Shown: positions 1,869-53,540 of the stretch, piece by piece | Layout: each line of letters starts with the position of its first letter | How positions within the stretch are numbered: the stretch's first letter is position 1 | DNA from: Euprymna scolopes | Lineage: Eukaryota | Assembly (NCBI GenBank): GCA_053919585.1 | Contig: CM132815.1 | Reading direction: 5' to 3' (one strand) | Length of the DNA: 64,000 nucleotides | Made by a program: the position numbers and the translations under genes | Notes under the pieces: model-generated | Told to the model about the DNA's origin: nothing | The model's database searches: none | What the model saw: only the letters and a program-made list of their open reading frames with translations

Positions 1869-2396
1869 AAGAGAAAGAGAGTAAAAGATAGAGAGGGAAA
1901 TAACACAGCACAATTAAAGCGGATACGTCTAATACATAATATTTTACTATTTTTGATAATAAATAAAAAATACACATTATCTGATATTACGTTTTGTCTG
2001 TTCAGCGAAGCGCGCGAAACTGAATGCTGTCTAAAAAAAAAAATGAAGAACGCGCAATATTGCTGCCTGGAACCAATTTATTCACACCCAAATACATTCT
2101 CTCTATCTCTCACACCTTTCTCCTCATAGTTCAAATTAAAACTCATTTTTCTTCTTGCTAATATAATAATATGTTCGCTTAGAATATTCGTCTAAATTAG
2201 CAACAATAACACTCGAGTGCTTTCTACTTTTATTTATTTATTCATTTATATTTTTTTTTTTGAAAAATGAACGGTTTACTAAACTGATTCGAGGTAATTT
2301 TTGTTGAATTAAAAATATAATTTTGTCGGAAGGGGGAGGTCGGTTTCATTTTTATTCGAACAAAATATTCGAATCTTTTGTCGAGGATTTGCGAAA

Positions 2397-5300
2397 GAAA
2401 ATTTCTCTATGTGTGTATAATATGGAGTTAAATGGTAATTGGAGTAATCCTGAAAATTTCTCTATGTGTGTATAATATGGAGTTAAATGGTAATTGGAGT
2501 AATCCTGAGAATTTCTCTATGTGTGTATAATATGGAGTTAAATGGTAATTGGAGTAATCCTGAAAATTTCTCTATGTGTGTATAATATGGAGTTAAATGG
2601 TAATTGGAGCAATCCTGAAAATTTCTCTATGTGTGTATAATATGGAGTTAAATGGTAATTGGAGCAATCCTGAAAATTTCTCTATGTGTGTATAATATGG
2701 AGTTAAATGGTAATTGGAGCAATCCTAAAAATTTCTCTATGTGTGTATAATATGGAGTTAAATGGTAATTGGAGCAATCCTGAAAATTTCTCTATGTGTG
2801 TATAATATGGAGTTAAATGGTAATTGGAGCAATCCTGAAAATTTCTCTATGTGTGTATAATATGGAGTTAAATGGTAATTGGAGCAATCCTGAAAATTTC
2901 TCTATGTGTGTATAATATGGAGTTAAATGGTAATTGGAGTAATCCTGCAAATTTCTCTATGTGTGTATAATATGGAGTTAAATGGTAATTGGAGCAATCC
3001 TGAAAATTTCTCTATGTGTGTATAATATGGAGTTAAATGGTAATTGGAGTAATCCTGAAAATTTCTCTATGTGTGTATAATATGGAGTTAAATGGTAATT
3101 GGAGTAATCCTGAATATTTCTCTATGTGTGTATAATATGGAGTTAAATGGTAATTGGAGTAATCCTGAAAAATCTCTATGTGTGTATAATATGGAGTTAA
3201 ATGGTAATTGGAGTAATCCTGAAAATTTCTCTATGTGTGTATAATATGGAGTTAAATGGTAATTGGAGTAATCCTGAAAATTTCTCTATGTGTGTATAAT
3301 ATGGAGTTAAATGGTAATTGGAGTAATCCTGCAAATTTCTCTATGTGTGTATAATATGGAGTTAAATGGTAATTGGAGTAATCCTGAAAATTTCTCTATG
3401 TGTGTATAATATGGAGTTAAATGGTAATTGGAGTAATCCTGAAAATTTCTCTATGTGTGTATAATATGGAGTTAAATGGTAATTGGAGTAATCCTGAAAA
3501 TTTCTCTATGTGTGTATAATATGGAGTTAAATGGTAATTGGAGTAATCCTGAAAATTTCTCTATGTGTGTATAATATGGAGTTAAATGGTAATTGGAGTA
3601 ATCCTGAAAATTTCTCTATGTGTGTATAATATGGAGTTAAATGGTAATTGGAGCAATCCTGAAACTTTCTCTATGTGTGTATAATATGGAGTTAAATGGT
3701 AATTGGAGTAATCCTGAAAATTTCTCTATGTGTGTATAATATGGAGTTAAATGGTAATTGGAGTAATCCTGAAAATTTCTCTATGTGTGTATAATATGGA
3801 GTTAAATGGTAATTGGAGTAATCCTGAAAATTTCTCTATGTGTGTATAATATGGAGTTAAATGGTAATAGGAGCAATCCTGAAAATTTCTCTATGTGTGT
3901 ATAATATGGAGTTAAATGGTAATTGGAGCAATCCTGAAAATTTCTCTATGTGTGTATAATATGGAGTTAAATGGTAATTGGAGACATCCTTAAAATTTCT
4001 CTATGTGTGTATAATATGGAGTTAAATGGTAATTGGAGCAATCCTGAAAATTTCTCTATGTGTGTATAATATGGAGTTAAATGGTAATTGGAGTAATCCT
4101 GAAAATTTCTCTATGTGTGTATAATATGGAGTTAAATGGTAATTGGAGTAATCCTGAAAATTTCTCTATGTGTGTATAATATGGAGTTAAATGGTAATTG
4201 GAGTAATCCTGAAAATTTCTCTATGTGTGTATAATATGGAGTTAAATGGTAATTGGAGTAATCCTGAATATTTCTCTATGTGTGTATAATATGGAGTTAA
4301 ATGGTAATTGGAGTAATCCTGAAAAATCTCTATGTGTGTATAATATGGAGTTAAATGGTAATTGGAGTAATCCTGAAAATTTCTCTATGTGTGTATAATA
4401 TGGAGTTAAATGGTAATTGGAGTAATCCTGAAAATTTCTCTATGTGTGTATAATATGGAGTTAAATGGTATTTGGAGTAATCCTGAAAATTTCTCTATGT
4501 GTGTATAATATGGAGTTAAATGGTAATAGGAGCAATCCTGAAAATTTCTCTATGTGTGTATAATATGGAGTTAAATGGTAATTGGAGCAATCCTGAAAAT
4601 TTCTCTATGTGTGTATAATATGGAGTTAAATCGTAATTGGAGCAATCCTGAAAATTTCTCTATGTGTGTATAATATGGAGTTAAATGGTAATTGGAGAAA
4701 TCTTGAAAATTTCTCTATGTGTGTATAATATGGAGTTAAATGGTAATTGGAGTAATCCTGAAAATTTCTCTATGTGTGTATAATATGGAGTATAAATGGT
4801 AATTGGAGTAATCCTGAAAATTTCTCTATGTGTGTATAATATGGAGTTAAATGGTAATTGGAGTAATCCTGAAAATTTCTCTATGTGTGTATAATATGGA
4901 GTTAAATGGTAATTGGAGTAATCCTGAATATTTCTCTATGTGTGTATAATATGGAGTTAAATGGCAATTGGAGTAATCCTGAATATTTCTCTATGTGTGT
5001 ATAATATGGAGTTAAATGGTAATTGGAGTAATCCTGAAAATTTCTCTATGTGTGTATAATATGGAGTTAAATGGTAATTGGAGTAATCCTGAAAATTTCT
5101 CTATGTGTGTATAATATGGAGTTAAATGGTAATTGGAGTAATCCTGAAAATTTCTCTATGTGTGTATAATATGGAGTTAAATGGTAATTGGAGTAATCCT
5201 GAAAATTTCTCTATGTGTGTATAATATGGAGTTAATGGTAATTGGAGTAATCCTGAAAATTTCTCTATGTGTGTATAATATGGAGTTAAATGGTAATTGG

Positions 5301-35462: not shown

Positions 35463-35651
35463 GTATTTATTTGCTTCCCCACTGAGCAAATTAGGCACAA
35501 GGCCGTTTTTTAATGTGGAGAGCGAAGGTGAAATGGGGACCAGCTATCCGGGGAGTAGGGGAGCTGGATAGTGATAATTGGTATGAAGGGTTGACCCTAC
35601 ATTGACCAATAACTTATATGCGGGGGCAACCCCACATATGGTCTTTGCTTG
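35463..35651 (-). mobile_element. Dispersed single copy of the 210-bp structured element (subtype A) arrayed at 51111-53195
   Basis: The reverse complement reads caagcaaagaccatatgtgggg...cggccttgtgcctaatttgctcagtggggaagcaaataaatac, collinear with the array unit. It lacks the 5' U2 fold-back hairpin. Confidence 0.9.
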
Positions 35652-38934: not shown

Positions 38935-39178
38935 NNNNNNNNNNNNNNNNNNNNNNNNNNNNNNNNNNNNNNNNNNNNNNNNNNNNNNNNNNNNNNNNNN
39001 NNNNNNNNNNNNNNNNNNNNNNNNNNNNNNNNNNNNNNNNNNNNNNNNNNNNNNNNNNNNNNNNNNNNNNNNNNNNNNNNNNNNNNNNNNNNNNNNNNNN
39101 NNNNNNNNNNNNNNNNNNNNNNNNNNNNNNNNNNNNNNNNNNNNNNNNNNNNNNNNNNNNNNNNNNNNNNNNNNNNNN
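38935..39178. other. Assembly gap
   Basis: Run of N. Confidence 1.
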
Positions 39179-43652: not shown

Positions 43653-43729
43653 ATCCCTTCACAGAACTTGGCCTTCGGGACAAGATCAAAGTGCAATTCG
43701 GGACAAGATCAAAGTGTAGTATCTGTTCT
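43653..43729 (+). pseudogene. U2 snRNA 5' fragment / U2-derived target sequence with an internal 20-bp duplication
   Basis: aagatcaaagtgtagtatctgttct (43705-43729) matches invertebrate U2, including the GUAGUA branch-point recognition sequence. atcccttc and cttggcc-ttcg-ggacaag resemble the U2 5' end and stem-loop I. ttcgggacaagatcaaagtg is present twice (43674, 43697). No U2 3' half is seen. Confidence 0.85.
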
Positions 43730-44078
43730 CTGATACATACACAGCGATAGGCAGTGTTGTTCTGGCGACACATTCTCGTGCCCGGCGAGCTTGTTGGGTA
43801 GCGTTCTGTCCGCACCCCCACTTGGTCTGTCTTTCTCTGCTCTCCCCCCTCACGGGGGGATCCGAGCTGATAATTTACGACCTTCCCGCGAGGGAGGGTC
43901 GGAAACACTTTCTCTCTTCCCTCCACTAACTTCCCACTCCCTCTCTCAGTTCTATCTCCCCTCTTGCCGCCTTTGGCGCCACTTCTTTTTGGCGCCAAAG
44001 TCGGCTCCCACTTTGGACGCCGACTCCACGTCACTCATTTTGGTGAATTATACAGGGAAGAGAGAGCTTTTTTCAAAA

Positions 44079-47009
44079 ATGGACACCCCCAACCCGGGGA
44101 CCACCAATAGCGATACCCCCAGCCAGGGGGCTACCACAAGAAAAACTGCTCCCCAAGAGGACGACTCCCCAACAGGGGAAGCAAAAAGCAACGGGGCATA
44201 CCGCCCGGACACTAAACCGAAGGACGCCCCCCAGAAGGGAGAAAACTCACCAGCAGCTCCCCAAGAGGGCGACTCCCCACAAAGGGGAGAAAAAACAATG
44301 TTGGACGGGGCATCCCGTTCCGACAATAAAAATCAAGAGGCAGTAGCCCCAAAGGACGATAAGGGAGACAGTGCTCCCCAAGAGGGCGACTCCCCACAAA
44401 GGGGAGAAAAAACAATGTTGGACAGGGCATCCCGCTCTGACAACAAAAATCAAGAGGCAGTTGCCCCAAAGGACGATAAGAGAGACAGTGCTCCCCAGGA
44501 GGGCTACTGCCCCAAAAGGGGAGTAAATCAAGAAAACGAGGGAGCATACAGCCTAGACCCCCCCCAAAAAAAAACAAAAGGGGCAAAAGCTCCCAAGGAC
44601 AATAAAGAGGACAATGCTCCCCAGGAGGCCGACTCCCCAAAAAGGGAAATATTTCCTGGAAGAAGTATAGAGCAGGGAGAGTCGGTCCCAAAGGAAAGCG
44701 GAAAGGGAAATGCCCCTCAAAATAGCAACCCTTCCGCCAAGGAACAGCAAAAACAGTCCAACCTCACCAAAGATCCAACACCAACAAGAGGGTCGGCATG
44801 GGGGAAGACTGTAGAGAAGCAACTGTCCCCTCAAGAGTATAGAGACTTGTACTTGACCAAGTACAGACAATACATAGAGGGGGCAGAAATTAAACCAGTG
44901 CCAGGCGCTTGGGAGGCAATCGAAGACATAGTGCTCTCCCTCATCATCTCGGATATGCCGGAAAACCGCCTCCTAGGGATGAAAAAGGAAGACATGGCAG
45001 GGCTCCTACACAAGCTAAACATCCCGGTATTATACCTGTACCAGAGGAGCTACGCCATGTGGGACATCCTCCTACCCACCAAGGAAGATGCGGAGAGACT
45101 CTCCCTACAGGAAATTAAGTATGGGAGAATAAAACTAAAGCCCGAATACCAGGGCAGGACAAGGACCCGGGTGCAGGTATTCAATGTACCTATGCAAATA
45201 TCAGCAGAAATCCTGGGATCCTTCTTCACACAGTTCGGCGAGGTGGAAAAAATAACCCCAGTGCGGTCGAAAACCGGCATGCACTTGGGCAGCTACACTG
45301 TGGTCATGAGGCTTAAGAAAGAAGGCTTCCAGGCGATACCAGCACAGCTGACATTTAAGGAGGCAACTATGACAGTAGTAGTGGAGGGGCGTCGTCCGCA
45401 CTGCTGGTTCTGCCAAAAACAGGGTCACATGGCCAAGAGCTGCCCTCAAAGGTCAACTCCTACTCAAGTGACACTAAAGGCGGTCCCAACCTCTGAGACA
45501 GCACCAGTGTCCAAACAGGCTGTCACAACTCCTGCAACCGGAGCACCAACCCCAGCACCGAGGAAACCCAAAACTGTGCAGGAGGCCAAAGGGGAGGAAT
45601 GGATCACGGTAATGAGGCGGAAATGGAAGCCCACAATCCCATCTGCCACCGTCCCACAACCAACCCAACAACTGAGGCAGCAACAACAACAGCAGCCTCC
45701 ACAACAGCCGCAGCAACAGCCATGGCAGCAGACACAGCAGCAGCAGCCAAACCAGCCGTTGAACCAGCCGCAGCAACAACATCAGCTGCCGCGGCCAATG
45801 CCACAACCAATGCCACGAAAACAGCGGCAACAACAAAAACAGCAGCAGCAGCAACAGCCAGAACAGCAGCAGCAGCAACAAAAACGGCTGCAGCAACCAG
45901 AAAAGCAACAGCACCAACCGGAGAAACAACATCTAGAGGAGCAGCAACAACCAACGGTCCCCACACCAATTGAGACGGGGATCAAGCGAAGAAAACACTG
46001 CTCCTCTGAGGATGAATCTGCTAGTGAGAGGGAGAGGAACTCAACCTCACCACTCCCCGGTTCATTCAAAAGAATAAAAAAGAAAAGGAAAGGGGAAGAA
46101 AAGGCAGCCCCCACTCCCTGTGAGCATACACCACCTCTAACAACAACACAACCCACTTCCACCCCCATACCACATACTGCACCAACACTAGACACCGCAC
46201 TAACACCAACACCAACATCAGACACCGCACCAACACCAGACACTGCACCAACACCAGAAACTGCACCAACACCAACACCAGACACCGCACCAACACCAAC
46301 ACCAGACACCACACCAACACCAGACACCGCACCAACACCAACACCAACACCAGACACCACACCAACACCAGACACCGCACCAACACCAACACCAGACACC
46401 ACACAGACACTCGTCCCCACACCAATGCAAATTGAGCCGCCATCCCAGAAAGAAAAGAATGAACCCGGGAGGGGGAGAGACCCTTCAGATTCTCCCACTT
46501 ACGGACTCACTCCAACAGGGACTCTCGCCCTCGAAACGAGAGAGGAACTTTGTTTTGTAGACCCCCTGTCTGTGGCAATGGGCTTACCACACCGGCAGAG
46601 AAAAAATTTAAAACCTCTGCTGGACTTCCAACAGATAGGGGGAAAAGACGTTAATGTCCCCTCTAATTTCCCGGACGCCCCACGGCTAACAACTTTCGTC
46701 AGGCTTCCTGAGGCCTGCAAAACCAACGTGTGGACAATGCTGGAAGCCGCTGAAGGGGCTGGTCCGGGAATTGAACTGATTAGGAAAAATGACCCTTCCC
46801 TTGAGGAACTCGCAAAACAATGCAAGGGAAGGGTCCCAGTGTTGGTCCATCCGTCACTCTATAGGGCCCTTAAATTGACTTACCCTTTGAATGTCGGCGG
46901 CATTGTGAGAGAAGGTCAGGACATGAAAAACCTGACCACCTTGAGCATTGCACACAACGTCGGTGTCCTTTCCCCGGCTGACTTCGGAGCTGAGTGTAAC
47001 ACACCTTAA
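44079..47009 (+). CDS. LINE ORF1 nucleic-acid-binding protein, 976 aa from first ATG
   Basis: Intact frame with an RRM-like segment RVQVFNVPMQISAEILGSFFTQFGEV and zinc knuckle CWFCQKQGHMAKSC (45402-45443). It also has 39-aa N-terminal repeats, a polyQ tract, basic KRIKKKRK and DTAPTP repeats. Confidence 0.88.
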   Translation: MDTPNPGTTNSDTPSQGATTRKTAPQEDDSPTGEAKSNGAYRPDTKPKDAPQKGENSPAAPQEGDSPQRGEKTMLDGASRSDNKNQEAVAPKDDKGDSAPQEGDSPQRGEKTMLDRASRSDNKNQEAVAPKDDKRDSAPQEGYCPKRGVNQENEGAYSLDPPQKKTKGAKAPKDNKEDNAPQEADSPKREIFPGRSIEQGESVPKESGKGNAPQNSNPSAKEQQKQSNLTKDPTPTRGSAWGKTVEKQLSPQEYRDLYLTKYRQYIEGAEIKPVPGAWEAIEDIVLSLIISDMPENRLLGMKKEDMAGLLHKLNIPVLYLYQRSYAMWDILLPTKEDAERLSLQEIKYGRIKLKPEYQGRTRTRVQVFNVPMQISAEILGSFFTQFGEVEKITPVRSKTGMHLGSYTVVMRLKKEGFQAIPAQLTFKEATMTVVVEGRRPHCWFCQKQGHMAKSCPQRSTPTQVTLKAVPTSETAPVSKQAVTTPATGAPTPAPRKPKTVQEAKGEEWITVMRRKWKPTIPSATVPQPTQQLRQQQQQQPPQQPQQQPWQQTQQQQPNQPLNQPQQQHQLPRPMPQPMPRKQRQQQKQQQQQQPEQQQQQQKRLQQPEKQQHQPEKQHLEEQQQPTVPTPIETGIKRRKHCSSEDESASERERNSTSPLPGSFKRIKKKRKGEEKAAPTPCEHTPPLTTTQPTSTPIPHTAPTLDTALTPTPTSDTAPTPDTAPTPETAPTPTPDTAPTPTPDTTPTPDTAPTPTPTPDTTPTPDTAPTPTPDTTQTLVPTPMQIEPPSQKEKNEPGRGRDPSDSPTYGLTPTGTLALETREELCFVDPLSVAMGLPHRQRKNLKPLLDFQQIGGKDVNVPSNFPDAPRLTTFVRLPEACKTNVWTMLEAAEGAGPGIELIRKNDPSLEELAKQCKGRVPVLVHPSLYRALKLTYPLNVGGIVREGQDMKNLTTLSIAHNVGVLSPADFGAECNTP

Positions 47010-47019
47010 GGTAGGTACC

Positions 47020-50000
47020 ATGGCTTTGAATTTGGCTAGTCTGAATGCGAGGGGCTTGAGATCATCGGGCCGGGCGGCTCGCGACCGGCACGACCTCTTG
47101 TCCCTGGGAGTGGATGTTGCTGCGATTCAGGAGACGCATTTCGTTTCCTCTGTGGACTGTCAGGTGCTGGCCCGAGACTTTGAGGTTTTCTCAGCATATG
47201 GCAGCCCGCGGGGGAAGGGAGTTTCCGTGTTGGTTAAACGTACCCTGTCGGCGACGGTCGACGTTGTCCATAGAGATGCGGTGGGTAGGCTGGTTGTGGC
47301 CGATGTTGCCGTAAAAGATTCTGTGTTTCGGGTGATTGCGGTTCATGCGCCCAGCACCGCTCGTGAGAGGGTCTCATTCTTCAGTCAGCTTGACGCGTTT
47401 GTAGATTGTCGGAAGCGGGTAGTGCTAATGGGGGATTGGAATTCCATCTTAGACCCCGACATAGATAAGGTAGGAGGCGGAGCTAGAGGATCGGAGAGGT
47501 GCGAGTCCAGCCTGGCTGATCTGATGGCTAGATGCGGTCTGGTCGACAGGTTTCGGTTTGAGCATCCAGGGCGGGAGATGTGGACGTGGACCAATAGTGT
47601 TTCCTCCTATCCAAATACTTATTTGGACAGGATGTTAGTTAGGAAAGGCGAAGTAGACTTCTTATCTTGTCCCACGTTCACTTGGCTAGGCCAGACGGAC
47701 CATAAATTAGTTATGGCCCGGCTGAAGCTAGGAAATAGGCCTAAGTTAGCAGGGTACTGGAAGTTAAACACCTCCCTTCTGGAGATACAAGACTTCCAAG
47801 ATCAGTTAAGAGAATTGATTAAAAAGGCACTAGTGGGGGCGGTTACCGGGAGTAAGTGGTGGTTAGGTCTCAAAGCCAAGATCAGAAGCTTCTCCGTCAA
47901 GTATGCGCAGCGCCTCGCACTAGATAAGGCCAAGACGAAGAAGAAGCTAGAGCAGAAACTAGCCCAGGCTACGGGGGAGGGTGATAGGGTTAGTCAGGAA
48001 CTAGCTAAGCAGGACCTTCTACGCGAGACTAGCGAGCGTTACGAAGGCCAAGTAGTTAGAGCTAGGCTTAGAAAGATAGGCAACGAAGCAGTCAATTCTG
48101 ATGCAGACGTGCGCCGTGAGGTTTCTAGGCGTGGCTCGGACAAATACATTGCAAAAATCAAACATCCGAATGGACGCACCCTGGAATCGACTCGAGAGAT
48201 CTGCGAGGGGTTTCGAGAACATTTCGAGGAGCGTTTTACGCAGCAGCCCGATCTTCCGGTCCTTGAGTTTAGCGACTATTTGGCCGACTCTCCCCGCCTC
48301 GAGGCGGCTAGAGCGGCTGGTTGCGAGGGCCGGGTGACGGAGCAGGCGGTCTTTACTGCGCTGAAGCAGGTCAGCTGTGACAGATCGCCAGGACTTGATG
48401 GTCTGCCATACGAACTGTACTTGAGGCTGTCGCCCATGTTTCTGCCTCTTCTGACGGATATGTTCAACCATTGGTTTGCTCAGGGATCCATCCCAGGTGA
48501 CCAAGGGAGTGATCACATTGCTGAAGAAAGGTGACGGGCATGGAGGGGAAGAGTTAGACGACTACAGGCCCATAACTCTGCTAAACACAGTTGAAGATTT
48601 TGGCCAAGGTCCTGTCGAATCGGCTGCAGGTTGTTATCGACGAGTTGGTTGAACCGGAACAGAACTACGCTGTGAAGGGGAGATCGATTCAGAACAACTT
48701 GCACCTGATCCGCATGATCCTAGAGGGGGAATAGATGACGACACGGAAGCCGCGCTGATAAACTTAGATCAGTCCAAAGCTTTCGATAGGGTCGACCATC
48801 GTTTCCTGGCATCTGTCTTAGAGGCCGCCGGTTTTAAACCGGACTTTTGCAAGTGGATCTCCATAATGTATCGACAGCCCATGGCTGTCGTGCAAGTCAA
48901 CGGGAAGCGCTCGAAACCCTTTGTTATCTCTCGGTCGGTTCGTCAGGGTTGTCCGCTGTCGCCCCTGCTTTATGTCCTGGCTTTGGAGCCTCTTCTCCGC
49001 AAGCTGAGACATGGGGAGGCAAATTCGGCCCTGCGCGGAATGGCTCTGCCTGGCGGCTCAGCTGCCAAGGTATCCGCGTTCGCCGATGATGTCACGATCT
49101 TCGTGTCGGGCTTCAGAGACATTGAGGTCGTGTCGGAGGCACTCACACAGTACGAAAGAATTACAGGGGCCAAGATAAACAAGTCGGTAGGACTGCGGTT
49201 GGGCGCATGGAGTGGCAACGCAAACCTCCCTGCGCCTTTCAGCTGGACAGATGGCCCGGTCCGGATCCTCGGCGTGTGGTTCGGACCGGGTCTCCAGCTT
49301 GACAAGAATTGGTTGGAGGTACGGTCAAAGGTGGAGGCTGCAGTCAATTCGTGGCTTCCTAGGAAACTTTCCTTAAAGGGTAGAGCTGAGGCGTGCGCCA
49401 CTTACGTCTTTCCTCTCATCCTTTACCGACTGGCCGTACTTCCCCTGCCTGCACAACACCTAAAAGCTCTTGTCGAACTCTTGTCCTCGCTCCTTTGGGA
49501 CAGAGGAAGACACTGGGTGAGCAGACAGGTCTGTATTCAACGTCCGTGTGAGGGAGGCTTGGGAATGCCGGACTTGAAGTGTCATCGAGATGCTGAGAGG
49601 CTGGCCTTCCTGAGCCACTATATGCAGGAGGACCAACCGTGGCACCCCGTGGTTACTGCCGCCTTCCCCGACCTCGTTCTCGACCCTTCCATCGAGAGCC
49701 GTCGCAGGCCGCGGGGAGAATCTGCCTACATGAAAGAGTGCCGAGCCGCGCTAAAACGACTACCAAGGTCCAGTGACCTTGTGACTGCTACCCGTAGGGA
49801 ACTCCACAGGGATCTAGTGAAGGGGGCCGCTGACGACCCGCTATGCGCGCGTTTGAGGTGGCAGCAGAGTGAGATCCGCTCCGCGTGGAGCTGGGCGCCA
49901 GGTTCGAGTCATCTGAACAATTCGGAGTTCTCTCTGACCTGGCGATTGGCCCTAAATGCACTTCCACTCAACAACATACAATGCAGTTCTGGGTTTCTGG

Positions 50001-50443
50001 AGTCGCCTGATTGTCCCCGTTGTGGGACAACGGCTGTGGAAACTACGGATCACGCTTTCTTCGATTGCCGCGAACTCCGCCAGTACTGGTCGTATGTCAG
50101 TGGGGTGACGGCTCGCATCGATCCTGAGCATCCTCGCCCAATTACTGTATCCAATGTTGTGGACAACGTGAGGCCGCCGTGGGACCGGGAAAGACAAATG
50201 GTCTACGTTACGATTCTGGCCGTGGCGAGAATGGTGATTTGGACGTCGCGTCTGCAAGGTTGCCGGGGGGTGTTGTCTTTTTCTGATCAAGATCTGATCG
50301 CGTTCTTTAAACACCAACTACGGGTGAAGATCAGATGTGATAGAAGAAGGCTGCATCGCGCGGCATTTGACAGAAGATGGATACATGTGGCAAGTCTGTG
50401 TGTACGAAGAGGAGCCAAATTTGAATACGTGTTCCCCGCCTAG
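47020..50443 (+). pseudogene. LINE ORF2 (AP-endonuclease, reverse transcriptase, CCHC) with three frameshifts near 48497, 48590 and 48730
   Basis: APE motifs SLNARGL, IQETH, MGDWN, YLDRML and TDH. RT motifs SPGLDGLP, YRPITLLN, LDQSKAFDRVDH, RQGCPLSPLLY and FADD. C-terminal CPRC...ETTDHAFFDC. The ATG follows the ORF1 stop after a 10-nt spacer. Confidence 0.93.
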
Positions 50444-51110
50444 GTGTGGAACGCGTAGTTCTGTAAAGTTAAATTAAACAAGTAGTCTCTCAGCTAGCTG
50501 AGTGTGTGTTCCATCCCTCCCCGATTAGGAAGCCTCCAAGATCCCCATCCCCTCTTACCTGCAATTTTTGTTTTCACCCCTTCCTCTAAATTTTACCCAT
50601 CTTGGAGAAAAAGAAATACAAACTAACCTCCATCCCTTACCCACAAAATTTTCTTTTCTCCATTCACCCCCATCTAGAGGGCATCCCCACCTAGAGACTG
50701 ACCCGCAGAAGCGAGGTTCCTTTTACAAACCTAGTGGAACGGGCAGTCTATCAACTAGACGGGGTTGGGAGGGTCCTACTAATCACCTTTTGTTTTTTCT
50801 TCCCCCTCCCTCGACACAAATGAATTATTGTTACCATTTTATTGTTATCTTTTTTGTTTTTACACGTCAATAAAAAATGTTTTAAAAATTGGGAGTTACT
50901 AGGACGTCCCCCAATATGAAAGGGTGAATGCGGTATTATGGTGAAAGAAGATACTAGCTGGGAGAAACTTTTGACTTTGTTTAGTTCTGGAGTGACAAGG
51001 ATGACCAACGACCCCCAAAATCCCCCTTTTGAGTTGGCCATGTGCCTAAGTTTTTTGTTCACCGTTGATTTTTTTCTGTATTTTTTTAACATGAATAAAA
51101 GATTTAATAT

Positions 51111-53195
51111 ATCAAAGTGTAGTATCTGTTCCGGCAGATACTGCAAGCAAAGACCATATGTGGGGGCAACCCCACATATAAGACCTTGGTCAATGTAGGG
51201 GCAACCCTTCATACCAATTGTCACTATCCAGCTCCCCTACTCCCCGGGGAGTTGGTCCCCAGTTCCCCTTCACTCCTCACTTTAAAAATCGGCCTTGTGC
51301 CTAATTTGCTCGGTGGGGGAGCAAATAAATACCATCTGTTCCGGCAGATACTGCAAGCTATGACTAGCTATGACTAGCTATGACTAGAAAAGACCAGATG
51401 TGGGGGCAACCCCACATGCCTGACCTTTAACCAGCTCCCATTTCCCACCTCTCGGGAGCTGGTCCCCTTTTTCCCTTCCCCCTCCCTTCACTCCTCACAT
51501 TAAAAATTGGCCTTGTGCCTAATTTGCTCGGTGGGGGAGCAAATAAATACCATCTGTTCCGGCAGATACTGCAAGCAAGGACCATATGTGGGGGCGTCCC
51601 CACATATAAGACCTTGGTCAATGTAGGGGCAACCCTTCATACCAATTGTCACTATCCAGCTCCCCTGCTCCCCGGGGAGTTGGTCCCCATTTCCCCTTCA
51701 CTCCTCACATTAAAAATCGGCCTTGTGCCTAATTTGCTCGGTGGGGTAGCAAATAAATACCATCTGTTCCGGCAGATACTGCAAGCAAAGACCATATGCG
51801 GGGGCGACCCCACATATAAGACCTTGATCAATGTAGGGGCAACCCTTCATACCAATTGTCACTATCCATCTCCCCTACTCCCCGGGGAGTTGGTTCCCAT
51901 TTCCCCTTCACTCCTCACATTAAAAATCGGCCTTGTGCCTTATTTGCTCGGTGGGGTAGCAAATAAATACCATCTGTTCCGGCAGATACTGCAAGCAAAG
52001 ACCATATGTGGGGGCGACCCCACATATAAGACCTTGGTCAATGTAGGGGCAACCCTTCAGACCAATTGTCACTATCCAGCTCCCCTACTCCCCGGGGAGC
52101 TGGTCCCCATTTCCCCTTCACTCCTCACATTAAAAATCGGCCTTGTGCCTAATTTGCTCGGTGGTGTAGCAAATAAATACCATCTGTTCCGGCAGACACT
52201 GCAAGCAAAGACCCTATGTGGGGGCGACCCCAGAGATAAGACCTTGGTCAATGGAGGGGCAACCCTTCATACCAATTGTCAATATCCAGCTCCCCTACTC
52301 CCCCGGGGAGCTGGTCCCCATTTCCCCTTCACTCCTCACATTAAAAATCGGCCTTGTGCCTAATTTGCTCGGTGGGGGAGCAAATAAATACCGTATCTGT
52401 TCCGGCAGATACTGCAAGCAAAGACCCTATGTGGGGGCAACCCCACAGATAAGACCTTGGTCAATGGAGGGGCAACCCTTCATACCAATTGTCACTATCC
52501 AGCTCCCCTACTCCCTGGGGAGTTGGTCCCCATTTCCCTTTCACTCCTCACATTAAAAATCGGCCTTGTGCCTAATTTGCTCAGTGGGGCGAGCAAATAA
52601 ATACCTCAAAGTGTAGTATCTGTTCCGGCAGATGCTGCAAGCTATGACTAGCTATGACTAACAAAGACCAGATGTGGGGGCAACCCCACATGCCTGACCA
52701 TTAACCAGCTCCCATTTCCCACCTCTCGGGAGCTGGTCCCCTTTTTCCCTTCCCCCTCCCTTCACTCCTCACATTAAAAATCGGCCTTGTGCCTAATTTG
52801 CTCGGTGGGGGAGCAAATAAATACCATCTGTTCCGGCAGATACTGCAAGCAAAGACCATATGTGGGGGCGACACCATATATAAGACCTTGGTCAATGTAG
52901 GGGCAACCCTTCATACCAATTGTCACTACCCTACTCCCCGGGGAGTTGGTCCCCATTTCCCCTTCACTCCTCACTTTAAAAATCGGCCTTGTGCCTAATT
53001 TGCTCAATGGGGGAGCAAATAAATACCTCAAAGTGTAGTATCTGTACTTCAGATGCTGCACTTCTATTTCTTGTTCACTTTCGGTGGAGGAGAAATCCTT
53101 CACGACTGAGACAATTTTTATTTTTGTACCTTTTCTCCACGTTAAAAAACGACCCTGGTGTCTAACTCTGTCCCGTGGGGAGGCATAGTAAATAG
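51111..53195 (+). mobile_element. Tandem array of 10 short structured non-coding elements (order A B A A A A A B A C), probable non-autonomous partners of the Tx1 LINE
   Basis: Unit starts at 51111/51124, 51334(B), 51552, 51762, 51972, 52182, 52393, 52606(B), 52826 and 53028(C). The A period is 210 bp. Each unit begins with U2-derived (tcaaagtgtagt)atctgt and ends in ggccttgtgcctaa-hairpin-taaata (degenerate in C). Confidence 0.8.
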
Positions 53196-53540
53196 GTACA
53201 TTAATTGCCTCTGTTAAACTATTATGATAAAAAATTACATTCCTTGTGTTCTGAAATAGTTCCTTCTGATTGGACAAGAGATTTCTCTCTGAGTAATCAA
53301 CAAGCAATTATTATTTATTTTTTATGGCGGATGGAATAAAAAGGTTTTGTTTGTTTTCGTTTTTATGTGGTATCTGGCCAGTCAACACAACAAGGGACCT
53401 ACTCCTCATTTTTAATCGGTGTTTATTAGAGTGAAACGTATTCCTAGATTTGTCTTGTTCAATGAACAATTATATCAAGAGCTGGTATTTTATTAATTAG
53501 TTTAGCAACAAGTATTTCTTCTCTTACAGTTTCAGTTAAC

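Follow-up and report, generated by a model that had tools for sequence, protein, structure and literature searches.

A head-to-tail array of a LINE and ten short units with U2 snRNA-derived leaders in Euprymna scolopes

Among the described elements closest to the subject of this report, three kinds are tied to the U1 or U2 small nuclear RNA (snRNA). SINEU are U1 and U2 snRNA-headed short interspersed elements (SINEs) of crocodilians whose origin and transcription were left open; co-transcription with the target was discussed as one route to them (Kojima 2015, PMC4494074). Keno elements are long interspersed elements (LINEs) of the Tx1 clade that are specific for U2 snRNA genes (Kojima & Fujiwara 2004, as cited in PMC4640811 and PMC4494074). 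Utopia elements, whose crocodilian members show relaxed specificity and carry U2-like junction bases outside U2 genes, share a site with Keno: the U2 sequence downstream of Utopia starts at nucleotide (nt) 39, and the 3' flank of Keno is identical (Kojima and Jurka, PMC4640811). Here we describe an array of one LINE and ten short units, joined throughout by U2-derived bases, in a 64,000-nt stretch of Euprymna scolopes DNA (GenBank assembly GCA_053919585.1, contig CM132815.1; hereafter the window). We consider it probable, at roughly 60%, that members of a single mollusc LINE/SINE system were retroposed independently and came to be stacked at this locus.

The array spans positions 43653-53200 and lies on the + strand throughout. 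A U2-like leader fragment is followed by a 7,385-nt LINE and then by ten short units in the order A1 B1 A2 A3 A4 A5 A6 B2 A7 C (seven A, two B and one C), all in a single orientation. The limits of the units were set by a recurring end, GCAAATAAATACC, followed by a recurring start, TCCGGCAGAT, and these boundaries, together with alignments, bear out the layout of U2 5' fragment, LINE and ten like-oriented short units that had been proposed in an initial annotation made from the sequence. The parts of the array, and one related copy outside it, are as follows.

43653-43693, + strand: left-most U2-like leader fragment, consisting of ATCCCTTC, a 6-nt insert and CTTGGCCTTCGGGACAAGATCAAAGTG; ends at about U2 nt 33
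43694-43696, + strand: CAA filler, read from the sequence as separating the retained target head from the LINE's own leader
43697-43729, + strand: U2 leader of the LINE itself, truncated at its 5' end, TTCGGGACAAGATCAAAGTGTAGTATCTGTTCT, about U2 nt 16-46
43727-51111, + strand: LINE, a defective copy of an L1/Tx1-type non-LTR (long terminal repeat) retrotransposon
51112-51333, + strand: 18-nt U2 remnant (51112-51129) and unit A1 (51130-51333)
51334-51551, + strand: ATCTGT and unit B1 (51340-51551), with A-like ends and a distinct middle
51552-52392, + strand: units A2 (51558-51761), A3 (51768-51971), A4 (51978-52181) and A5 (52188-52392), with ATCTGT before each
52393-52605, + strand: GTATCTGT and unit A6 (52401-52605)
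52606-52825, + strand: 18-nt U2 remnant and unit B2 (52624-52825)
52826-53027, + strand: ATCTGT and unit A7 (52832-53027), with an 8-bp internal deletion
53028-53200, + strand: 18-nt U2 remnant and unit C (53046-53199/200), the distal end of the array, with unique DNA beyond
35463-35651, - strand: dispersed A-type copy, older and 5'-truncated, 88% identical to A1

U2-derived bases are found at 11 of 11 junctions: 18 nt at four, 8 nt at one and 6 nt at six. A motif count located exactly four copies of the 18-mer TCAAAGTGTAGTATCTGT in the window, at 43709, 51112, 52606 and 53028, always on the + strand (chance expectation 0.02); these positions, and that of the 8-mer at 52393, are as they had been annotated. 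The 18-mers lie at the junctions head/LINE, LINE/A1, A6/B2 and A7/C (the slash marks the joint), GTATCTGT at A5/A6, and ATCTGT at the six others. Since the GUAGUA branch-point box is present in the 18-mer junctions only, and the 6-mers are the bases 3' of the box, the initial annotation's claim of branch-point-region sequence at every junction holds for U2-derived bases in general and, for the box itself, at the 18-mers. An alignment of the junction variants revealed nested truncations of one sequence, and the junctions are in register: six read ACC/ATCTGT, one ACC/GTATCTGT and three (ACC or ATA)/TCAAAGTGTAGTATCTGT. At the left end, the sequence itself contains a 20-nt duplication (43674-43693 and 43697-43716), and the last 8 nt of the left-most leader, TCAAAGTG, recur at the 3' junction of the LINE.

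We aligned raw genomic reads from the same species (run X42; 1.93 Gb, ~0.3x coverage) to positions 49900-53500. Read depth was 0 in the unique 3' flank, about 900-1,200 and even over 49900-51109 in the 3' part of the LINE, and as high as about 9,400 in bins of the units; with an assumed genome size, these depths give rough estimates of ~3,000 LINE 3' parts and, for each of A, B and C, copies in the tens of thousands. Reads that enter at the 18-mers (2,369-3,159 reads at each of three sites) carry, after unconserved T/A-rich bases, the head consensus CTTGGCCTTCGGG(C/A)CAAGA, a 5' consensus that can also be written CTTGGCCTTCGGG(C/A)CAAGATCAAAGTGTAGTATCTGTTC(TT). This consensus of the loose read ends, whose motif CTTGGCCTTCGGGACAAGA also stands at 43667-43685 in the left-most leader of the array, indicates that full heads are the norm. 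At the other end, about 4,100 reads run past the 3' end of C into unconserved AT-rich sequence, with likeness lost after 53199/53200; among the matches listed, the loose-end reads have a terminal A at 53200 in 2,922 cases and stop at 53199 in 1,198. In all, 83% of the aligned reads leave the array for dissimilar sequence. It follows that a typical copy lies dispersed and bears its own U2-derived head of ~40 nt, which is the architecture of SINEU, and because full heads follow AT-rich unrelated DNA, the U2 bases at the junctions are remnants of the elements' own heads rather than of U2 genes. The initial annotation had concluded from a reverse-oriented copy away from the array that the short unit disperses. 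That copy, at 35463-35651, is real, with no U2 bases at either flank, and the reads place most of the copies of each type at dispersed sites.

The same stacked junctions recur elsewhere in the genome. The junction between a unit 3' end and TCAAAG recurs in 576 reads, in which position 51111 is C rather than A; 164 reads contain go-back joints (51333>51111 and 52825>51111); ACC-ATCTGT-T is joined to the body of C in ~236; and ACC/GTATCTGT is found in 157 (joint 52392>52618). Because a single bond within the head makes up about 1e-5 of genomic positions, such recurrence amounts to a very strong preference. The most frequent joint also falls at a familiar place. ATCTGTTC starts at U2 nt 38, and six of the ten short-unit junctions start at A38/T39, as compared with U2 nt 39 for the Keno 3' junction (TCTGTTCTT...); the offset of 0-1 nt vanishes if the last base of the elements is A, which seems to be the case in most copies of C. 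By this comparison of sequences, the main stacking junction coincides with the published Keno/Utopia site to within 1 nt.

Differences among neighbouring members of the array speak for separate insertions. Adjacent junctions are unlike one another (6 nt at A4/A5, 8 nt at A5/A6 and 18 nt at A6/B2), and so are the junctions upstream of B1 and B2. Some variants are common to neighbours, namely a T at alignment column 227 in A2-A4 and three variants in A5-A6; these are subfamily markers, because tens to hundreds of reads carry them at ~0.3x. The units of the array thus belong to several subfamilies, with pairwise differences of 3-9%. Private mutations are fewest in A1 (one) and most in A7, with two to five in each of A2-A7 and the deletion in addition in A7, a trend that weakly fits growth at the leader side. 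The claim that repeated site-specific insertion built the array is thus supported by the fixed junctions and the subfamily markers, with the correction that the elements' own heads, and not U2 genes, would have provided the landing site.

The mechanism that we propose is the following. The autonomous members of the system would be L1/Tx1-type LINEs with an apurinic-type endonuclease (APE), a reverse transcriptase (RT) and a zinc finger, and the non-autonomous members would be the SINEU-like units A, B and C, for which we infer mobilisation in trans. Every member starts with a leader of ~40-47 nt copied from the 5' end of U2 snRNA, gained presumably when a Keno-type ancestor specific for U2 genes was co-transcribed with its target. 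The endonuclease and the priming step would still favour the U2 site yet would also accept AT-rich DNA, leaving most copies dispersed. A sizeable minority would enter a resident leader, mainly at nt 37/38 (leaving ATCTGT) and less often at 27/28 (leaving the 18-mer) or 35/36. Such a newcomer would come to sit between the front of the resident leader and the remainder of the resident element, bringing a complete leader of its own; since it splits one leader and restores another, the stack would grow on the leader side. C would then be the founder and the LINE the last arrival. In particular, the LINE would have entered the leader of A1 at nt 27/28, duplicating 8 bp of the target (TCAAAGTG) and leaving a filler of 3 nt. 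TCAAAGTG does stand on both sides of the LINE (43686-43693 and 51112-51119) in the manner of a target-site duplication, and these flanks, with the CAA filler, are what an insertion at nt 27/28 of that leader would leave.

Three other accounts of the locus have to be weighed against a stack of separate insertions. The initial annotation had envisaged a U2-targeting system, and on the strictest version of that idea the array would lie in a decayed but genuine U2 gene or pseudogene into which strictly U2-specific elements had inserted repeatedly. The left end does align with U2 from nt 1, and both Keno and Utopia stack in U2 genes, as in the tandem Utopia-1_NVit (PMC4640811). However, the match of 43653-43774 to the Rfam U2 model is weak: it reaches 19.5 bits, where the gathering score is 46 (E 0.055), and covers positions 1-9 and ~25-46 of the model; at the gathering threshold neither U2 nor any other Rfam family is found in the whole window. 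The sequence of U2 stem-loop IIa is missing from the window even with up to 3 mismatches allowed, and no U2 3' half lies downstream of the array or elsewhere in the window, which places the array outside any U2 gene. Moreover, the leader matches the family's own diverged head (with its extra A and TTCGGG) and differs from canonical U2, and the thousands to tens of thousands of genomic copies, mostly dispersed with their own U2-derived heads, have AT-rich, non-U2 flanks. We therefore reject a seat inside a U2 gene, on the absence of stem-loop IIa and the 3' half and on the flanks of the genomic copies, and consider such a host site highly improbable. For annotation, stacks of this kind are better masked as interspersed repeats than taken for U2 pseudogene clusters or satellites.

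The two remaining accounts concern how the members came to be joined. By template jumping, the RT would pass from the 5' end of one element RNA to the 3' end of the next, so that the array would stem from one or a few events and the junction bases (ATCTGT, GTATCTGT, TCAAAG...) would be the 5' ends of processed or truncated RNAs rather than cuts. This is the cause preferred by Kojima for U1 and U2 additions to SINEU 5' ends, where 3'-truncated snRNA pieces and occasional microhomology are seen (PMC4494074). The left end of the present array, with its U2-like piece to nt 33, CAA and LINE leader, resembles such a 5' extension, the stable leader hairpin described below could set sites of RNA processing, and a clear age gradient is lacking along the array. 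Yet six junctions are identical and without extra bases, whereas template jumps usually add untemplated nucleotides; the main junction is a cleavage site known independently from Keno and Utopia; the units come from several subfamilies, 3-9% apart; and an RT that met the hairpin would stall before its 3' arm, not within its 5' arm. These points make template jumping unlikely as the source of the array. We give somewhat less credence still to the idea that unequal crossover or replication slippage amplified one stacked pair or trio, with the U2 bases as passengers. Tandem Repeats Finder reports a 210-bp period for the array (9 copies, 82% match), A2-A4 share a variant and the 6-nt junction, A5-A6 share three variants, and SINE-derived satellites reportedly occur in molluscs. 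Nonetheless, units of three types and junctions of three lengths are mixed with no higher-order period; the most similar pair, A5 and A6, has unlike upstream junctions; the variants common to neighbours occur in many other genomic copies; a 7.4-kb LINE stands in the same register; and hundreds of reads from other parts of the genome contain the same junction types. With non-uniform junctions, and with neighbour variants that are not neighbour-specific, the array does not fit a satellite made by unequal crossover, although unequal crossover may have contributed to it.

The members of the stack have features in common beyond the leader. The units are non-coding and 150-215 nt long (A ~204 nt, B ~212, C ~155). 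Alignment indicates that A and B have the first ~25 nt and the last ~110 nt in common, and that C has in common with them the design of a 5' hairpin and the last ~75 nt. A tail motif, GGCC(T/A)TGTGCCTAA, lies 45-75 nt from the 3' end and matches at 13 of 14 bases between the LINE and the units; the tails of all members contain this motif and an A-rich signal, without poly(A). In A/B, C and the LINE, the bases that follow the leader are complementary to U2 nt ~31-43, that is, to the branch-point box and its 3' side, the 3' arm of the resulting hairpin differing with each type. These hairpins, at 51117-51145 (A), 53031-53062 (C) and 43714-43742 (LINE), have stems of 12-14 bp; folding gave z-scores of -3.9 (A) and -6.6 (C), and the stem of the LINE is analogous. 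Several differences in the hairpin arms, in what is a small sample, are A-to-G changes that preserve G-U pairs, which hints at selection on the RNA. The common U2 leader, 5' hairpin, 14-nt 3' motif and stacking position support the view that the LINE and the short units form one retroposition system.

Apart from these features, a BLASTN search of the LINE against the window found no similarity to the units at E<=1e-3. SIDEs, that is, internally deleted LINEs, were rejected as a description of the units, since collinear 5' and 3' parts are absent and the likeness is limited to the leader and the 14-nt motif. The B units contain a 10-bp microrepeat, GCTATGACTA, in three copies in B1 and two in B2 (51363-51392 and 52647-52666, respectively). 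Between the common 14-nt motif and the terminal AATAAAAGATTTAATATA, the 3' untranslated region (UTR) of the LINE has a long A/U-rich hairpin (51047-51106; z -3.5), where the tails of the short units have a short GC hairpin.

The LINE itself has two open reading frames (ORFs), and its parts are as follows.

43727-44078, + strand: 5' UTR
44079-47009, + strand: ORF1, 976 amino acids, intact, with a weak CCHC knuckle
47020-50443, + strand: ORF2, with APE, RT and zf-RVT
50444-51111, + strand: 3' UTR, with the motif GGCCATGTGCCTAA at 51036-51049 and no poly(A)

Pfam searches of ORF2 detected Exo_endo_phos (E 1e-12), RVT_1 (4.9e-10) and zf-RVT (8.6e-7), an APE-type complement with no restriction-like endonuclease. 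Three frameshifts, near 48.50, 48.59 and 48.73 kb, interrupt ORF2, so this copy cannot be autonomous; its endonuclease domain (47020 to about 47700) is free of interruptions. The closest solved structure for ORF2 is human L1 ORF2p (PDB). Among reviewed proteins, the top match is the Xenopus Tx1 149-kDa protein (E 6e-11, 20% identity), followed by human L1 ORF2 (3.9e-8); the model of the C-terminal piece of the RT is of low confidence (AlphaFold, pLDDT 60), and the Swiss-Prot ranking is a weak hint. The nearest proteins in a large database are ~61% identical, and a search of the ESM Atlas returned only generic endonuclease/RT clusters. Membership of the L1/Tx1 group is safe on these data, whereas for a place within the Tx1 clade, as a Keno-like element, there is no more than a hint. 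We also considered whether the last 220 nt of the LINE (50890-51111) form a separate short unit and rejected this, since DNA depth is continuous with the body of the LINE. ORF1 contains three repeat tracts and is still open: a 117-bp repeat (2.3 copies, 92% match; 44256-44527), a Gln-rich CAG/CAA tract (45676-45918) and an 18-bp Thr/Pro-rich repeat (~14 copies; 46179-46425). Within 43727-43742, the bases that open the LINE after its leader, TCTGATAC, are identical to U2 nt ~59-66, and the leader of the LINE may accordingly represent an internally deleted 5' region of U2 and not U2 nt 1-45 alone.

Several observations weigh against a stack of separate insertions of one system. The LINE itself has its 3' junction at U2 nt 27/28 and not at the Keno site, and a 23-nt repeat at its 5' side could have arisen by slippage and then gained two substitutions, which we regard as less likely than the filler and target duplication set out above. 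The terminal ~60 nt of the LINE are unlike the tails of A, B and C, so the LINE family may not drive the short units; the claim that the units parasitise this LINE draws on the common leader, hairpin, motif and stacking site and, with ends that differ, is a weak one. The gradient of private mutations, which bears on the proposed insertion order, is itself weak; no empty or shorter allele was seen, and no target duplication beyond a chance 6-mer surrounds the whole array. The copy numbers depend on an assumed genome size and a library labelled 'GENOMIC OTHER', and the reads give no proper measure of the share of copies that are stacked. Finally, poly(A) RNA reads fall on both strands of the units together with upstream flank, and no discrete element transcript is seen; the RNA seems to come from host transcripts that read through the elements, and not from transcription of the elements themselves.

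Further observations concern the distribution of the units and the window at large. Near-identical copies of their 31-mers are present in DNA runs of at least seven organism labels, and contigs under two other species labels have the same units and heads. Two runs labelled as microbial mat metagenomes also contain such 31-mers (24-34% of the sampled words), which probably stem from animal DNA in those samples; exact-pattern metagenome scans for the unit 5' end and tail gave no match. In poly(A) RNA sequencing, unit C (53046-53200) is covered ~6x deeper than A and ~60x deeper than the LINE, equally on both strands. An open frame of 282 codons runs across B1-A5 (51515-52363) and stems from the periodicity of the repeat (210 = 3 x 70), with no evidence for a gene. 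The window contains two runs of N, at 1533-1868 (336 bases) and 38935-39178 (244 bases).

The finding of one head on a coding LINE and on its short partners, stacked at the Keno/Utopia site, supports co-transcription with the U2 target followed by retroposition of the leader, and raises the possibility that a site-specific element can outgrow the copy number of its target by carrying that target along. We tentatively suggest, with a little less than even confidence, that a Keno-type LINE escaped its low-copy target through a co-transcribed U2 leader, with each copy, and each SINE that borrowed the leader, becoming a new landing pad. If so, a self-propagating target would explain the origin of snRNA-headed SINEs, growth to ~1e5 copies and arrays ordered with the newest member next to the leader, and the conserved hairpin that spans the target bases would serve this cycle as a functional RNA element. 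Arrays that are ordered in time would also be natural records of subfamily succession.

The initial annotation knew of no earlier description of such an array. In the full-text literature, which was covered in part and so offers no proof, SINEU are reported only from crocodilians, and we found no U2-headed SINE or self-stacking array in molluscs; the building blocks, SINEU and Keno, were already known. What is new is thus the combination of a SINEU-type SINE and a Keno-like LINE that carries its own target, the kinds of component having been described before. Like SINEU, the units are short retroposons without coding capacity whose 5' head is copied from U2, with frequent 5' truncation or extension and no evident RNA polymerase III promoter; a Tx1-group LINE partner with the same target preference is described for SINEU and proposed here, and copies often lie beside other SINEU or Tx1 copies. 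Unlike SINEU, they occur in a mollusc, at far higher copy number, beside a partner-type LINE that also bears the U2 leader, and their tail and body appear to be unrelated to those of SINEU. The favoured landing site also differs: for SINEU it is a Mariner transposon, whereas here it is the elements' own U2 head, hence the regular head-to-tail stacks. With Keno, as summarised in the papers that cite it, the LINE has in common an APE-type enzyme tied to U2 sequence and, in its stacks, a dominant junction at the published 3' junction, nt 38/39; unlike Keno so described, the LINE in the window lies outside a U2 gene, has U2 only as a 5' leader and has its own 3' junction at nt 27/28, and the ~3,000 LINE 3' parts are not confined to U2 genes. 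Utopia uses the same U2 site and forms tandem insertions in U2 genes, but it has a restriction-like endonuclease and a single ORF where the present LINE has APE and two (PMC4640811). As with the SIDEs of R2, non-autonomous partners of a site-specific LINE stack at one site, although the bodies of A, B and C resemble the LINE in nothing save the leader and the 14-nt tail motif. Target-regenerating LINEs include Kibi and Koshi (microsatellites), TRAS/SART and HeT-A/TART (telomeres) and Zepp of Chlorella. The present elements resemble these in forming head-to-tail arrays since each insertion recreates or carries the target; in those LINEs the target is a simple repeat or the 3' tail of the element, whereas here it is an snRNA-derived 5' leader common to a LINE and its SINEs.

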